From contig CM074805.1 of NCBI GenBank assembly GCA_037447605.1, positions 1,087,361 through 1,151,360 on the forward strand: a stretch of 64,000 nucleotides of DNA, written 5' to 3'. Origin of the DNA: Zygnema circumcarinatum SAG 698-1b (Eukaryota; Plantae; Zygnematophyceae). A model generated the notes under the pieces. The model did not search any database. It saw only the letters and a program-made list of their open reading frames with translations, and was not told where the DNA came from. Positions within the stretch are counted from its first letter, which is position 1. Each line of letters opens with the position of its first letter. Positions 45,202 through 53,800 of this stretch are shown here, one piece after another. A program made the translations under genes and the position numbers.

Positions 45202-45421
45202 CCATCCGTCCATCCATCCATCCATCCCCATTCATCCATCCATCCCCATCCATCCATCCATCCTCATTCATCCATCCATCCTCATTCATCCATCCATCCT
45301 CATTCATCCATCCATCCTCATTCATCCATCCATCCCTCCCCATCCATCCATCCATCCCTCCCCATCCATCCATCCATCCCTCCCCATCCATCCATCCATC
45401 CCTCCCCATCCATCCATCCAT
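45202..45421. repeat. Compound (CATC)n microsatellite with 18-nt and 22-nt higher-order units
   Basis: [(CATC)3-CTCATT]x4 followed by [CCTCCC-(CATC)4]x~4, preceded by degenerate units. Confidence 0.95.
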
Positions 45422-46150
45422 GTCCCCCCCGGTCCCACCGCCCCCTCCTCCCGAGGTCGGGCGGGCGGTCCCAGTTTTGGAGCCGTTGGCCGGCCCCCCC
45501 CCGCCGACACGCCTCCGCCGCCGCCGCTTTTCAAACGGGGACGGCGCCGGCCGGCCACAAAAGGCACCTGCCCGCCCGCCCGCTTTCAAAAATCGAAGGC
45601 CCCGTCTTCCGCGGCCGTACTAAAAATCAAGCTGGGCCAATGAGCAGGAGGTCGGTTCTATGCTCGAAATCCGTTGAAATAGGTCTCAACTGGATTTGGA
45701 ACAGGGGCAAGTGCGTTTGTCGGTAGCGGGCCGGTACGGAAAGAGCGCGCGCGGGACCTTCTTGAATGCCGCAGCGCAGAGGGAGAGCGCTGCAGGCGGC
45801 AGGCGGCAGGCGGCAGAGGGGCCCTATGGCGGCTGGGAGCAGGGCGTGGGTCAGGTATAATGCGGTCTTTGGGGGCTTTTTCAGGGGCAAAGGACGCAGA
45901 ATCCTGGCTTTCTGCTGATGTGGGATACGCGGGTGAAGGACGCTACTTCTTTGGCAAGCTCGTCAGTGGAGGCCTGGCAGGGAAAGAACCAGAAACGCGG
46001 CTATTGGAGTTTTTTCGCAGTGTTAAATTTCTGAACTGGCTGGTTTCTTCATGCTCAGCGTCTCTTGTTCTTGCTGCTTCTTCTGCATCCCCGACGGCCA
46101 GCCATGAGACTCACCGCAGAAGTGGCTAATGGAGCAGTGAGGGGCCAGCT

Positions 46151-49100
46151 ATGGAGACCGAGAGTGTCGTGTCTGCGGAGGATGCCCACGACAGCCCTGC
46201 CTCAGAGTTTGCTGGATTTCCGACTGCACAATTGTCTACCGGCCATGGCGACTCTGACTCGACCTCGTCTGTCGTTAAGACAAGGGAGCGTCCCCTTCCA
46301 CCGCTTCCTCCCATTCCTGAGCTGCCGACCTGGCAGATGGTTGAGTCTGGCAAACCCGGAAGTTTGAGCTACCGTGCACGCATCTTTGAATGGAAGAACC
46401 GCAGAGAAGTCTCCCCGTGGCATGGCATACCTCTATACACGGGAAGTAGTGCATTGCATGTTGTTTGCAAGACCCCTCGCGACTCAGGCTTCATCTTTGA
46501 AGTGGCTCGAGATGAGAACTTCACTCCGTTGAAGTTGAGAAAGCTGCCTCAACAACCGGCTTATTACACTTGTAATGCCCCCTGCCATGTTGGGCTTCTC
46601 CCACAGACATGGGCTGACCCGGGTGCAGCCTCTGATGGCATGCAGCAAGATGGCAACCCCTTCGAAGTTTTAGACATAAGCAGGCGTGCGGCACGAACGG
46701 GTCAAGTGTATGCGGCAAAACCGCTTGCAGCATTTGCTGTGATTCATGGCGGCACAACTCTTTCATGGAAGATCATTGTGATTGCTCTTGATGATCCGTT
46801 GGCTGGCGAACTGAAGAACGTGAATGATGTACAGGAGAGAATGCCTGATGCTCTTGCAGAAGTGCGGGAATGGCTGCGCACTTGCATGTGGAGAAACTCG
46901 GGTATACCCCTCAACTTCTTTGAAACAATCCTTCGATCATGACTTTGTCGTGTCTCGTGATCTCGACTGCTTGATTTTTTTTTTGTTTGCATTTTAAATT
47001 GAACACACAGGGGAGCCCAACCGGTAGAATTGCAGGCCAATCCTCCCGTTGGTTTTTGTTTTTCAATAAATACCTTTCATTGTTGAAAATAGAATGTGAA
47101 ACGCAGCATGCCATATCTGTCCTAGACACAGCGTCGTGATCGTTCCCTCGTTCATTGGCGTGAGCAGGCGATCCAGATGTATACTTTGGCCTCGATGGCA
47201 CTGTTGGAGACTGTCAGCTGGCAGTGACAGTGATTGCAAAAGCGCACAAAGCCTGGCTGCGGAAGTTTGGAGATAAAGAAGGGCATCGAAGCCGGGGGGA
47301 TCAGCAGTTGAACAGCATCAAGTCGTCCAAGGGACGTCCCCAGGACACGTTACAGCGTGCATACTCTGTTCACCAGAGCCAAATTGGACTATCGAAAGTA
47401 TCCTGCTGTGAGCCCAAGAAGCCGAACTCCGAGTCGCAGTGTGGCTTGCTTTGGGTTGAGGGCTCGGAAAGGCCATCATGTCTTTCGGGAGTTCCACCTC
47501 CAGTGAACCCCACGCCTACAAGTTCACAGTCTCCCGCTTCACATATGCTTGTTGAAGCTGGAGTTGGGCCAGGTCCAGGCGGAATAGGCTGCTGGAAAGG
47601 CATCATAGGGAAGCTTGTCGGGGGAATCCGGTTGGACTCAGACTTGTGCTCCTCGTCGATCAGTGAAGGTCCACACTCACCAAAGGCGACGGCAGCGTCC
47701 CATATCCACCAGCGTAGAAGGCCTCCACCGCCTCCAAGGCTAAACCCTGAGATAGCAAAGCAGGAGCCTGCAGGACGCGTGAGTGAGATGCAAGAGCCGG
47801 CTGTTCGACTGAGTTCACGCCACCAAAGTTTACGGATCCATGCCGGCTCTGACTTTGTGGGTGACTCCCTTCCAACCCCAACTTTAAGTAGGAGCAAAAC
47901 TTTCTCTGAAGGTCAGTTTGCAGCTCAAAAAAGATCGAGGGCACCACTTGGCATGGGAGTTACAGGCTTTGCCTTGCCAGAAGATGCTGACACGAATGAC
48001 GGTGTCAAACATCAAGGTCTGCAAGGACTTTCTGGGCCGAGCCAAACAGTAGCGAGCAGGAACAAGGTAGGGACTTTTGATCCAAGGGCAGTTATTAAAG
48101 ACGAGAATGAAATAGGTCCCAGTTTAGATCGCAGTCAAACGATCTCCGAAGGTCAGTACGCTGCTCAAAAACAGGCAAGGGGGAAAGGGAGCATGGATGA
48201 ACCTCATAGTTTTACTAAAAACCTGACAGGTGGTACATCAAGGGAGAATAAGTTATTGATGCAGACTACAGCTGGGATATCTTTCTCTGCTGCTGATGCG
48301 TCCGAGCGGAGGCTATCAACTCGATCCGGTACACTAGGTAAAATAGAAAATAGTCCGGGCAGGGTAAGGCCAAGTCTGGACCGGAGTCAGACCATATCTG
48401 AAGGACAGTTTGTCAATCAGAAGCAGTCGACGACGAAGAGGTTTGACTTAGACCTGCCTGGTGGAGTTGTGGTCACTGAGGAGACGGGGGCATACGTTGA
48501 AGATTCAGAATCCGCACAATTTTATTTCATGACATCCCAGCCACAGCCGTTTGACCAGGCCACATTCCCAGCGAGCAACAACAGCCTTCCGCCATTTCCT
48601 CGACAGAATAATACAGGGCATTCCTATGACAGCAGCAAACTCAAGCCTAGTCTAAGTAGAAGCCAGAGCTTTTCAGAGGGTCAATCTGCAGCAGCAAGGC
48701 AGTCGAGGATTAGTTACAGTATGGGATTGATGGGAGAAGCTTCCAGTTCAAGTATAGGAGGTATGAATGAGGGAGATCTAGTTGTTCTGGAATCTATGCC
48801 TACAGCTTCAGAAGCTCGTCGAGGGCCTACGGCTGGGGGAAGGGAAGTGCCATATGCATCACGATTACATGCGGATGAAAGCCCTCGTGATAGTCCGACT
48901 GAGTGGAAATTTGTTGCACAGCAGTCTGTTCGAAGAGTGGATCGTGAACAGGCAGGTCGACGCCAGCGAATACAAGAGGATGGACCTGATGGGGGAGAGC
49001 CTGCTTGGGACGAGAGGCGATACGCAGGAACATCGGGAAAGCAGAAAGTGACAGGGAGTCTGCAGGGGCCCCCAGCAGTGTTGCCCTTGACACAGACTAC

Positions 49101-49833
49101 AGAGGCCATCTTGCGGCAAAGAGAGAACCTCACCCGAAAATTGGAGGAGAGTGCACGGCGGCTGGCGGCAGAGGAAGATTCAGAAAGGATTGGAGCACGT
49201 TCTCGGGTGAGAGCAGGTGACTATGCATCCGTAGGAAGGCAACTTCATGACAGAGCGGAGGGTTCAGGGAGTTCAGTTAGCATGTATGCACCAGAATTCA
49301 AGGACGCCGAGAGCAGCAGGCCAGTCGACTGGGCTACCTGGTTGGGACGAGGAGAAGGGCGAGCTGCCGAAGCTCAGAGCTCTCTTATTTCACATCGCTC
49401 TTTACAGGCGATGATACGGGAGAGTGCATGGTCACAGCATCAGCCAGCAGGCGCAAGCCTGTACAGATCAGGAGCAACCCAGGACTTGTTCAACTCTTCT
49501 CGGCAAGCTAGTCATCCCGCGGAATCGCTGAGAACGGGGGGGGAAGCTATGGACATAAGATGGGAAGCCGATGATTGGAAGGGAGGGGGTGAAGGAGGGG
49601 TCAGGTATGCTGAAAGCGGGGAAATGGGTGTAGGAATGGCCAGTCAGAATGGCCCTCGAAGCGGGCACGTGCCCGCAAGAGAAGGGATGATTAGTGATAA
49701 ATCAGCTGATGAAGAAGTCACTCTGTCTATAAAAGAAGATGATAGTGCGAGTAGTGTGTCAGGGGTAAGGCTTAGTCTTGGAAGGCCCGCAGCGTTTCTT
49801 AGTGTACCAAGAGAAGTTTTGAGAAGGCTATGA
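46151..49833 (+). CDS. Family I inorganic pyrophosphatase-like protein, probably catalytically dead, with a long repeat-containing C-terminal tail
   Basis: Exon 46151-46901 plus exon 47168-49833 (phase-1 GT-AG intron). PPase scaffold motifs: VSPWHGIPL, FEVARDENFTPL, GLLPQTWADP, KPLAAFA, WKIIVIALDDPLA, EVREWLR, YFGLDG...AVTVIAKAHKAW. The 3' end could alternatively splice at 49765. Confidence 0.85.
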
Positions 49834-50864
49834 GGCGTGGCTTGTAAGATTTCTTTAAGCGGATTAGAAAGACTAGGAAAGTGCTAGAAGTCATTGTAGA
49901 ATAAGGTTGATATTTGTGTTCATTCATTGTTCCAGATTTACCACAGAGAGATAAACGATACCTGGGCTTTTCCCAGGGCTGTTTTTTTTTCCTTGCAGCC
50001 ACATCAATGTAAGTAAGCTGGCGGTGGTACGAATCAAGTAACAAACTGAGCATGGTCAACTGGTCGTGAGTTTGAGTTAAATGAATGGTCAAACAGTCAT
50101 GGGTCTTTTTATCCGTGCGTTTTTTAAACCCTCTAAGTGAAAGCCCCCCTTCTGTGTTGCTTCTGAACGCGTCCTTTCGCTGCAAGTCATTGCACAGAAT
50201 GGCATTTGTTGCCGAGTACTTGACAAGGGCAATCTGGGTCCATACATGAGAACCTATTGAAGCAAAGTGTGGCATTCAAGAGGGGACGGCTTAGAAGGCA
50301 TGCTTGTGGCAGCCATTGCTGGGAGAAGTAGAGTCAAAACACTGTAGCATAATAGAATGGCCCTTACGATATTGGGCCTAGTTTGCCGAGTTCCACCATT
50401 TTCTATATTGACGTATAGACCACATGCATGCAGGATCAAGTTTTGCACACACACACATCCTGTTGCCGCATGCGTGGTTGCGTGCTGGCAGGCGGACTCA
50501 ACCTTCAAGCGAATGTGATATTCAGCGTACCACGGTCGTCTCCTGTCAAAGAACATGGAAAAGTACACGCCGTATATATATAAAGTACAATTTCGTACAT
50601 TCAACCTGTACTTTCAGGTACGTGACGATGTACGATCATCGTCCAGTTGACAGGAGCACTTGAGTTGCGGGCACCACCTACCGTGCAGGAGCAGGAGCAG
50701 CAGGAAGAGGGCCTCCTTGGCTGCTTCAGATGTCAGCCTGAATTCTGAGTCCATTTGGGCGCCTCTTCACCGTCGTTTCTCGCTGTATTGGGCTAAGAGT
50801 GCATGAATTCTGACAATACTATCATTATTCTTCACAGAAGCGCTTTACCCGAGCGGGCGCCAGT

Positions 50865-53800
50865 ATGATTTCACAGATCTTCATGCTGTCGCCTCGTGGC
50901 GACAACATCATCTTTCGTGACTGTATGTTTGCGGTCTCGCTCTCTCTGCTTCTCTGCATCGTCTCTTCCTCGCTCAATTCTTTTTTGATTTACTTTTTCT
51001 TACTCTCCTTCTCTCCATCCTACTCCTTTGCCTCTCGAAACGCAAGCAAGTGCTGCAAAGTTGGATTCGTAAAGATAGAAGTTTAAAGAAGTGAACGCTT
51101 TCGGCTTCCCTAGGCGCTTTGTCATGGAACATTAGTCGAGCCTGAAGCGGTTTCTATAGGTCTCTTCCGTCTGCGAGCAGTTGCAATACATAATGATGAT
51201 GCTGCGGGGGCATTCTGGCTGTCAATTACCTTTTTATTATTTATTAATTTCTTCCTAGAACAGGATATATTCTGAAGAGCTTTGTTACTGGCGTAAGAGT
51301 TTCAAACGCAACATTTTCCACTGGTCAGGTTATTAGAAAGCTAGTATGCAAAATGAGAAGATCCAATTGGATTGGTTGAATTATTTACACCCCTTGCATA
51401 CGCTCGCCTTATGATGAAACACCTAGTGCTTGCCATCTGCGAGGTCGCAATCACCGTCCTGTTTTTGGACTGCAACTTACATCTAGCCTGACAACGAAAC
51501 CAGTTATGCAGGGCAAGTACATGGAATAATGCGATCACAAATAGGAGGAAGGAATGTAGTTGTTGCTGGAACGGCAACTAAACTCATGTGGCATGCATGT
51601 CATCCCATGGCCTATTTCATCGGAACCTTGAAAACTCCAGCTTGATGCTTACTTGTCTCTTGTTTGCAGACCGGGGAGATGTGCCTAAATCGAGTGCAGA
51701 AGTATTCTTTCGTAAATTTAGGTTCTGGAAAAGTGACGAAGGCGAGGATGCTCCTCCCGTTTTCGTGAGTATTTCTTTTTTGTTTGTTTGTTTGTTTGTT
51801 TGTTTGTTTGTGTGTTCGATCTTCTTCGTGGAGATCTCCTTATGTGGATGGTTTGGCGGACAATAGCTGACGTGTATTTGTTCAATAATTGCTAATGCAA
51901 AGGTAATAAGCTGTTTTATCCTGTTCACAAGGACCACGCCTGCACTACTCAAGCTGGCGTTTTTGAAGGCTCCGGTTGGGTATCAAATGGGCTGGTAGTT
52001 TACCCAGACATCGTGTCCTCATTTTCTCCCCGTTTGTTTTTCACCGTTTGCTGCAGAATGTGGATGGAGTAAACTACTTGCATGTGAAAGGAGCTGGCCT
52101 TTTGTTCGTGGCCACAACTCGTTACAACGTTTCACCTTCTTTGATTCTGGAGCTTCTTCAACGCATTGCCCGGGTGGCAAAGGATTACCTCGGCATTCTT
52201 AATGAAGATTCCCTCCGAAAAAACTTTGTTTTAGTGTACGAGCTCTTGGATGAGATGTTGGTAAGTGCAGCCCGACATTGGTTGTCATTTTGGCATCACG
52301 ACTTGCAAGTGTTCAGAAGTGTTCATACTGGGTAATCATCTACCTATTTAATTCATCGTGCCTTAAATTGATTGTGCTTGACTTGGGATAGGATTTTGGC
52401 TATCCTCAAAGCACCTCTACAGAGGCATTGAAGTCGTTTGTCTTCAACGAGCCTGTGTCTGTGGATTCTTCAAGGGTGCTTCCTGCTTCGCTAGCTGCTG
52501 CCTCAATATTCATGGTATTTAGTTCGATCCCAAAAACCTCTGTTTACAATAGCCAACGAAGCGTTTTCATGGCTGTCTACGTTCATCATCCCAAATAGAG
52601 GTGGCCTCTGTTTCGTCGGTCCAGTTTTTGCTTCGTGACCATTCTTATCCCGTCCACGGCTGAGCTGTCCTTAGGCTCTTCTGCTGCATTCTGCGAAAAA
52701 AACAGCATGAAGGTGCTGACTTCTGGAAAGCAGAATGAAAACATGCTGTGGCAGCATGGAGCCAAGCGTGTTCCCGGAACTGCTGTCACCAAGTCGGTGG
52801 TGGCCAATGACCCTCCGGGCCGCAAGCGGGAGGAGGTGTTTGTGGACGTTATTGAGCGCATCAGTGTCACCTTCAATTCTAGTGTACGTGTCTGTTACTG
52901 TTTCTATCTCTTTCTCTTCGCTTTGCCTCTCCCTCTCATTCTTTTTGTCATTATCTCTTTCAATGGCTTGTTATCTCTGCTCTCTTTTTTTTTCTTTCTA
53001 TTTCTGTTTCTGTTTCACTCCCCCCCCCCCCCCCTTTTTTTACTCTCCCTTTCTAATTATTCCTTGCTTTAGTACCTGGTTCTCTATCAGATGGCAGACA
53101 CAGGCTGGAGGTTCTATGATTGAATGGGAAATTCAGAGCGTTCTGCTGGTTTGTGGGTGCTTCAAGCAGGGATACATATTAACATCAGAAATAGATGGTA
53201 CTATTCAAATGAAGAGCTATCTGACCGCCAATCCAGAGATCCGATTGGCCCTAAATGAGGACCTTGGGATTGGCCCAAATGGATCGTCAGGTTTTGGTAT
53301 GTTCAAGCTCAAATCCCAAATGAGACATATTGTCGTAACTGAAGCTGATCTTTTGGAGTCTACTAGAGCTGACCTTGCAGCCTAATTACGTATTGTCTAG
53401 GCTTAGTAATATACGTTTTTCTTCCTTTGCAGCTCCTGGAGACAGTAGGATGAAGCTCTTAGATATGGACGGAATAAATTAATCAAGTGGGTAATGTTGC
53501 AGGGAGTGTTGGAACGGTGCTTTTGGACGATTGCAATTTTCACGAGAGTGTGCGATTGGACGAATTCGACTTGGATCGCACATTGACTCTGGTGAAAGAT
53601 TTACTTTGATTACATTGTGGTCTCACTCCTCTTATGGATTATGCAAGGAATGGCTGCGTTACTCTTGCAGCAAGAGTTGAAGACTTTCTAGATCCATTGA
53701 CATATATATTGGCATATAAGGAGGCCAGAGGGTCCTCCAAGCAGGAGAGGCAATCAAAATGGGAAAGGTAGTTTTTATATTTTTGGTATCCAAATGACAT

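Follow-up and report, generated by a model that had tools for sequence, protein, structure and literature searches.

A transcribed pyrophosphatase-like protein of Zygnema circumcarinatum with a dismantled active site and a long disordered tail

We analyzed a 64,000-nucleotide (nt) stretch of the genome of the zygnematophyte alga Zygnema circumcarinatum SAG 698-1b (assembly GCA_037447605.1, contig CM074805.1, forward-strand positions 1,087,361 to 1,151,360), referred to below as the window; all coordinates are positions within it. An original prediction, made from the sequence alone, had placed at 46330–47270 a pseudoenzyme that keeps the fold of a soluble inorganic pyrophosphatase (PPase) but has lost the active site. 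What lies at the locus is a transcribed two-exon gene on the + strand, whose coding parts, 46151–46901 and 47168–49833, are joined to encode a protein of 1138 amino acids (aa). The predicted domain is present, but it is only the head of this protein, which continues into a tail of ~850 residues.

In the list of open reading frames (ORFs), the gene appears as a 263-aa ORF at 46151..46942 (+) followed, in a different register, by a long ORF at 47224..49833. We mapped Logan contigs from four public runs belonging to three studies to the region 45400–51300. The contigs of the four runs cover 45706–50018 with zero mismatches, and in each run a contig skips a 266-nt GT..AG intron at 46902..47167 (+). 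Since these contigs are spliced, the four runs are RNA, although the run records do not state so. Retention of the intron is weak and confined to some low-depth contigs (a depth of 8.9 for the intron-retaining contig versus 57 for the spliced one). A splice acceptor at 47224 was ruled out, as the RNA contigs put the acceptor at 47167/47168. The coding part of exon 1 (46151..46901, +), defined by the ORF, by a match to Pfam family PF00719 and by the joint seen in contigs of all four runs, comprises 250 codons plus one base and ends in codon phase 1, the split codon being G|GC (Gly). Exon 2 (47168..49833, +; translation and Pfam search) contributes 887 residues after the split glycine codon and ends with the stop codon at 49831–49833. 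The stop-free span of ~230 aa described in the original prediction thus holds for the spliced message but not for the DNA read straight through from 46330 to 47270, where a stop is met at 46940–46942 and the intron intervenes.

The message further includes a 5′ leader at 45706..46150 (+), with RNA contig starts ranging from 45706 to 45831, and a 3′ untranslated region at 49834..50018 (+), which is defined by the longest RNA contigs, the contig pieces ending at 49903–50018. Within the leader, an 89-codon upstream ORF (45860–46129) begins with ATG, shares the frame of the main ORF, and ends with TAA 7 codons before the main ATG. Its stop is confirmed by the RNA contigs, and it may control translation.

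The ORF at 46151..46942 matches Pfam PF00719 over residues 106 to 244 with an E value of 2.7e-15 and 56.9 bits, against a gathering score of 23.5. A phmmer search of the PDB matched 30 distinct solved PPase sequences, the best being human PPA1 (6c45; E value of 3.8e-23) and yeast Ipp1 (1huj; E value of 5.3e-22). The PPase fold spans residues ~59 to 285 and is preceded by 58 N-terminal residues that are acidic and proline rich. Its main part, residues 59 to 250, is encoded at 46325..46901 (+) and was delimited by HMMER alignment, AlphaFold2, and Foldseek. The last strand and the C-terminal helix are encoded by the start of exon 2, at 47168..47270 (+; DPDVYFGLDG...VIAKAHKAWLRKF in translation), which in BLASTP gave weak matches to the corresponding region of canonical PPases and other members of the family; we take it to correspond to the IPDGKPENQFAF...IIKETHDSWKQL region of the yeast enzyme. 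All of the scaffold motifs listed in the original prediction are found: SPWHGIPL, GLLPQTWADP, WKIIVIALDDP, and EWLR.

The structural model agrees with this assignment. AlphaFold2, run on an alignment of 100 family and canonical sequences, modeled residues 59 to 250 with a mean predicted local distance difference test score (pLDDT) of 95.8 and a predicted template modeling score of 0.91. In Foldseek, this model matched human, yeast, and Toxoplasma PPases (6c45, 1wgi, and 5wrt) with template modeling (TM) scores of 0.89 to 0.90 and root mean square deviations (rmsd) of 1.4 to 1.5 Å; with trypanosome PPases included, TM scores were 0.87 to 0.90 and rmsd values 1.4 to 2.3 Å, at ~29% identity. By profile and by fold, the head is a member of the PF00719 homologous family, and the modeling proposed as a check on the original prediction bears out its claim that the PPase fold has been kept.

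Two further observations concern the N-terminal extension. A proline-rich stretch, RPLPPLPPIPELP, lies directly before the PPase-like domain at 46267–46320 (residues ~40 to 57), and a second one, RRRPPPPPR, occurs in the tail near 47740; both are possible ligands for SH3-, WW-, or profilin-type partners. A plastid transit peptide seems unlikely, judged by eye from the 10 Asp or Glu residues within the first 58 positions.

Canonical PPases, as known from the yeast and Escherichia coli enzymes, hold three to four Mg ions with seven carboxylates and bind the leaving phosphate in a basic cradle. We assigned the catalytic positions (yeast numbering throughout) from the HMMER alignment to the yeast sequence and from column analysis of the family alignments. 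Among 13 classical active-site residues (E48, K56, E58, R78, Y93, D115, D117, D120, D147, D152, K154, Y192, and K193), 10 are replaced in the window protein, and E58 (E117 in the window protein), D115 (D167), and K154 (K207) alone are kept. The replacements are E48 to K (K107), K56 to I (I115), Y93 to V (V147), D117 to N (N169), D120 to E (E172), D147 to H (H199), D152 to S (S205), Y192 to C (C245), and K193 to M (M246); R78 falls on A137 or on P133 according to the alignment of a gapped loop, and E148, outside the set of 13, is replaced by G. The replacements named in the original prediction were therefore correct, but its account passed over the three residues that survive. Read across 14 key columns, the window protein has K I E P V D N E H G S K C M where ~60 canonical sequences have E K E x Y D D D D E D K Y K. 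Seven of the positions (E48, K56, R78, Y93, D117, D120, and D152) are invariant in all 44 canonical sequences aligned alongside. The PDB holds yeast variants E48D, Y93F, D115E, D117E, D120E/N, D152E, and R78K, which came up among the Foldseek matches; these structures exist because the positions were probed as catalytic.

The losses affect both halves of the catalytic apparatus. All four leaving-phosphate residues (K56, R78, Y192, and K193) are gone, as is Y93, and so are five of the seven metal-site carboxylates (E48, D117, D120 as an Asp, D147, and D152). E58, D115, and K154 survive in the pocket next to a Glu at 120 and a Ser at 152, which together would offer no more than a single metal site with a lysine beside it; the pocket's net charge has shifted from strongly negative to about neutral. 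The PROSITE-type signature, which we take to be D-[SGDN]-D-[PE]-[LIVMF]-D-[LIVMGAC], is not matched by D-G-N-P-F-E-V, which departs from it at positions three and six. Judged by its residues, the head lacks the defining features of a soluble inorganic pyrophosphatase (EC 3.6.1.1): it retains 3 of 13 catalytic residues and D-x-D-P-x-D is broken twice. Since the basic cradle is entirely gone and the pocket is about neutral, canonical hydrolysis of inorganic pyrophosphate (PPi) by the head appears very unlikely.

To place the protein among its relatives, we used searches of increasing scope. A word-based search with the 263-aa ORF, restricted by a length window, returned three relatives with the same odd motifs, one of them from Closterium sp. 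NIES-54. A profile built from the window protein and these three relatives was then searched exhaustively with HMMER against 1.84 billion cluster representatives, giving 2370 matches at E ≤ 1e-3 and 210 at E ≤ 1e-30. At the catalytic columns, the best 150 matches split cleanly into ~60 with the canonical signature and ~60 in which it is dismantled. A profile form of the word-based search, saturated by candidates, gave 7 proteins. In the ESM Atlas, neither a feature-based nor a shape-based search found anything but ordinary PPase clusters.

In a maximum-likelihood tree of 129 PPase domains, the window protein falls inside a clade of 56 cluster representatives, all of them noncanonical. Support for the clade was 100 by ultrafast bootstrap, a rough value since the bootstrap had not fully converged, and 99.9 by the Shimodaira-Hasegawa-like approximate likelihood ratio test (SH-aLRT) in a careful run; a quick run gave an SH-aLRT of 99. 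The clade has a long stem, with 0.42 changes per column, and ordinary branch lengths within. Its members share derived residues: T replaces I49 in 49 of 56, E replaces D120 in 42, and D152 has become S in 34 and Ala in 10, while K154 is kept in 48 and Cys stands in place of Y192 in most. The window protein has the clade-typical T108 (yeast position 49), E172, S205, and C245, plus K207. Other positions vary among members, with K, T, L, or S at 48 and R, S, G, N, or K at 117. Cys at 47 and Cys at 192 are also typical of the clade; a disulfide or a metal site between them was considered, and we make no claim for either. Domain identity across the clade is 30 to 49%, and the tails are unalignable. 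The shared derived residues together with the deep, well-supported clade argue for one ancient loss of catalysis followed by conservation rather than for ongoing decay. We take the family to be an old branch that arose by duplication of the eukaryote-type soluble PPase, would have lost the catalytic set once, at its origin, and has been conserved ever since.

Conservation of part of the pocket can be read in two ways. Since E58, D115, E120, S152, and K154 are conserved across the clade, the pocket presumably still does something. One reading is that the head is an active enzyme with changed chemistry, in which a rebuilt pocket (E58, D115, E120, S152, K154, C192, and T49) slowly hydrolyzes PPi or acts on another phospho-substrate. 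That part of the pocket has been held rather than left to drift fits this reading, and the PPase fold can meet phosphoproteins, human PPA1 being reported to act on phospho-JNK1 (PMC3633968). The 10 of 13 catalytic residues that are replaced take in every residue of the P1 phosphate site and the majority of the metal ligands, however, and the replacing residues at 48 and 117 differ among clade members, unlike what a common new mechanism would require. In yeast mutagenesis, single conservative changes at catalytic positions already cost large factors in the catalytic constant kcat, which also counts against an enzyme with so many changes. We therefore consider changed chemistry improbable. The simplest role for the pocket would instead be binding of one metal and/or one phosphate group, and we favor a head that no longer catalyzes but binds either a phosphate-bearing ligand or a partner protein.

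The position of the clade in the tree bears on another possibility, namely, that the head keeps its dimer surface and heterodimerizes with the alga's canonical PPase, a pairing that the original prediction had suggested, so that PPi hydrolysis is tuned or moved elsewhere. The family I PPases of eukaryotes are homodimers; the canonical group that adjoins the clade includes a zygnematophyte PPase, Mesotaenium endlicherianum ME000198S02736; and the head superimposes on the PPase fold at 1.4 to 1.5 Å. Nothing that we tested speaks for a heterodimer interface, however. After the conserved Arg of the P-R-W stretch, the window protein has Asp in place of Trp, a residue that we take to be part of the yeast dimer contact, and the tail takes the place of the C-terminal extension found in yeast. 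The at least five paralogues found in a single genome, that of Mesotaenium, would also seem excessive for regulating one or two PPases. On balance, heterodimerization strikes us as unlikely.

Every named member among the clade clusters that we looked up is a zygnematophyte, from Mesotaenium, Closterium, or Netrium. Mesotaenium endlicherianum has five genes (ME000124S00201, ME000420S07042, ME000565S08349, ME000311S05214, and ME000191S02480), Closterium is represented by strains NIES-53, NIES-54, NIES-68, and Yama58-4 (e.g., CAI7752324.1), and Netrium digitus by EP00270_P008978. The other members come from transcriptomes or metagenomes; run ERR2041121 and assembly GCA_948144035.1 each supplied one of them. 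No land-plant protein was found among the clusters looked up (~26 representatives were not looked up). The family is therefore likely to be restricted to Zygnematophyceae, where it is much expanded, with at least five paralogues in Mesotaenium. Protein lengths in the clade range from ~200 aa, for fragments, to 2006 aa. The degenerate domain usually lies near the N terminus and is mostly followed by a long tail of low complexity; C-terminal tails of 80 aa or more, reaching 1836 aa, occur in 31 of the 55 other representatives. The window protein has T49, E120, S152, C192 and the general arrangement of an N-terminal degenerate domain with a long tail in common with other clade members.

The same searches brought up other unusual PPase-like proteins. 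P0004 (NCBI, 5113 aa) is a giant protein with ~20 degenerate PPase-like domains in tandem, and a canonical site is missing from each of them. In the tree these repeats group in a clade of their own, away from the zygnematophyte family, and may therefore represent an independent loss of catalysis. Six proteins (P0005, P0014, P0020, P0100, P0010, and P0011) have two to four tandem PPase domains with the full canonical catalytic signature, and P0027, P0046, and P0098 have tandem PPase pairs with partly degraded sites, which could be further independent steps toward dead PPase domains.

Beyond the fold, exon 2 encodes a disordered tail of ~850 residues rich in S, G, A, R, E, and P, without a match to any Pfam family. 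Four copies of the motif P-(S/T)-L-(S/D)-R-S-(K/Q)-(T/S)-(F/I)-S-E-G-Q are found in it, spaced 80 to 92 residues apart: repeat 1 at 47878..47934 (core PTLSRSKTFSEGQFAAQKR), repeat 2 at 48118..48174 (core PSLDRSQTISEGQYAAQKQ), repeat 3 at 48370..48426 (core PSLDRSQTISEGQFVNQKQ), and repeat 4 at 48646..48702 (core PSLSRSQSFSEGQSAAARQ), all on the + strand. Repeats 2 and 3 are identical at 16 of 19 residues, yet different codons are used at 11 of those 16, and nucleotide identity among the repeats is 56 to 70%. The copies are old. Since the residues have been kept while the codons diverged, the amino acid motif itself is under selection. The literal motif is absent from the other 150 proteins of the profile search, so the fourfold L-x-R-S-x-T-x-S-E-G-Q repeat sets the window protein apart from the other clade representatives. 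A separate observation is a charged, heptad-like stretch (ILRQRENLTRKLEESARRLAAEED) at 49240–49330, ~170 to 200 residues before the stop. It is the only helix-like element seen by eye in the tail and may form a short coiled coil.

The conserved core of the motif resembles a kinase site. The optimum of the SnRK2 kinase OST1 is [LIVMF] at −5, [RK] at −3, [ST] at 0, and [LFIM] at +1, with the intervening positions free (PMC2978106). All four repeats match it (LSRSKTF, LDRSQTI, LDRSQTI, and LSRSQSF), and these are the sole matches in the tail. Shuffling the tail gave 0.52 expected matches, and 5 of 2000 shuffles reached four. A loosened motif (basic-S/T-Q/N/K/R-S/T-hydrophobic-S/T) was present in 5 of 30 other family tails versus 0.4 expected, in a test that was framed after the motif had been seen. 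A Mesotaenium phosphoproteomics preprint and its supplements do not mention a pyrophosphatase. A comparable arrangement is known from the ABF/AREB bZIP factors, SnRK2 substrates in which LXRXX(S/T) sites create 14-3-3 sites (PMC2978106): they, too, carry several [LIVMF]x[RK]xx[ST][LFIM] copies in a disordered region, with R at −3 and S at −2 resembling 14-3-3 mode I. The window tail differs from them in having no sequence homology and no Pro at +2. We suggest that the four motifs could be sites for basophilic stress or calcium kinases of the SnRK2, CDPK, or SnRK1 type and that, once phosphorylated, they might be bound by 14-3-3 proteins.

The repeats also bear on another explanation for a dismantled active site, a decaying duplicate that merely resembles a PPase. 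Loss of catalytic residues by itself would also be expected from decay. Synonymous divergence with amino acid conservation in the tail repeats speaks against a pseudogene, however, and so do an intact 1138-codon frame across a correctly spliced intron, transcription in three studies, a deep clade with shared derived residues, and a fold core that is fully conserved and modeled at a pLDDT of 95.8. The pseudogene reading is already contradicted by these data and retains hardly any probability. Rather, the claim of the original prediction that the domain is kept under selection is upheld by the transcription, splicing, and intact frame of the gene, by the 56-member clade, and by the model; the PF00719 alignment and phylogeny that had been proposed as a check recovered this noncanonical clade. 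The roles suggested there for the domain, namely, binding, oligomerization, PPi sensing, or pairing with active PPases, are candidate functions.

Taken together, a head that is both selected and nonhydrolytic very probably describes this protein. We also regard as probable, with somewhat less assurance, the complete proposal that a selected, nonhydrolytic binding or scaffold head is mounted on a phospho-regulated disordered tail and that the protein acts as an adaptor. Hydrolytic inactivity, binding by the head, and phosphorylation of the tail are all predicted here from residues and motifs, and any specific ligand or partner named for the head would be doubtful.

Several points weigh against this proposal. 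Three pocket residues and the conservative D120E survive, enzymes occasionally work with rebuilt sites, and a weak or different hydrolytic activity is conceivable. With the closest relative that has DNA at only ~50% protein identity, synonymous sites are saturated, which precludes a ratio of nonsynonymous to synonymous substitution rates. No relative of the tail was detectable in the protein databases searched, the word-search collection apparently lacking the proteins of this genome. The kinase-site reading is based on a short consensus whose four copies do not count as independent, and the enrichment of its loosened form in other tails was sought with the motif already in view. All four repeats have Arg at −3 and Ser at −2, as in the 14-3-3 mode I motif R-S-x-pS/T-x-P, but the residue at +2 is Ser, not Pro.

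Comparison with known systems helps to define what is distinctive about the protein. The eukaryote-type family I PPases (yeast Ipp1 and human PPA1), whose plant counterpart we take to be the plastid PPa6 type, share with it the fold over ~230 residues and the SPWH, PQTW, SWK, DDP, and EW(L/F)R motifs; the window protein differs in having D-G-N-P-F-E for D-x-D-P-x-D, a ~850-aa tail, and a 58-aa acidic, proline-rich N terminus. PPase modules also occur within larger proteins, as in the trypanosomatid acidocalcisomal PPase with an EF-hand domain (5cuy) and in diatom ATP-sulfurylase–PPase fusions, and Drosophila NURF-38 is a PPase module of a larger complex. These modules keep the catalytic set and are active, whereas in the window protein the site is dismantled and the partner of the module is a disordered tail. 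Pseudophosphatases are often reused for binding their former substrate class. STYX, the inactive myotubularins, and the D1 domain of PTPRU (10.1101/805119) follow the same logic on unrelated folds: catalytic residues are lost, and the fold is reused for binding or scaffolding. In the literature and preprints, with thin coverage of subscription journals, we found no description of this zygnematophyte family or of a natural dead family I PPase, in line with the original prediction, which knew of no described plant or algal family of this kind. To our knowledge, and from the same literature search, there is no pseudoenzyme case among family I PPases.

Two features flank the gene. A (CCAT)n microsatellite at 45202..45421 (no strand; Tandem Repeats Finder, period 4, 60 copies) lies upstream, ~300 nt before the first RNA contig begins, and is probably promoter-proximal and outside the protein; its ~60 units give rise to spurious "IHPS" repeat ORFs on both strands. 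Downstream, an exon-like block at 50690–50922 is covered by very deep RNA contigs (depth of 134 to 369) that run on at 50922 into sequence outside the window. It looks like a highly expressed neighboring gene spliced to a distant exon.

Family I PPases are textbook housekeeping enzymes, and their active site is among the most invariant known. The clade described here appears to be a new pseudoenzyme branch of this family that combines a new architecture with expansion in the lineage sister to land plants. In its boldest form, the adaptor proposal would have a remodeled one-metal pocket that senses PPi, phosphate, polyphosphate, or inositol pyrophosphate, or docks a phosphoprotein, with tails written by SnRK2/CDPK-type stress kinases and read by 14-3-3 proteins. 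We offer this version as a long shot; if true, these proteins would constitute a zygnematophyte-specific class of signaling adaptors linking phosphate or energy status to stress signaling. The head would provide a clean model of a metal-dependent hydrolase pocket converted into a binding site. The family occurs in algae that are used to reconstruct the ancestor of land plants, and if its tails are stress-kinase substrates, they would represent an unexplored layer of zygnematophyte signaling.

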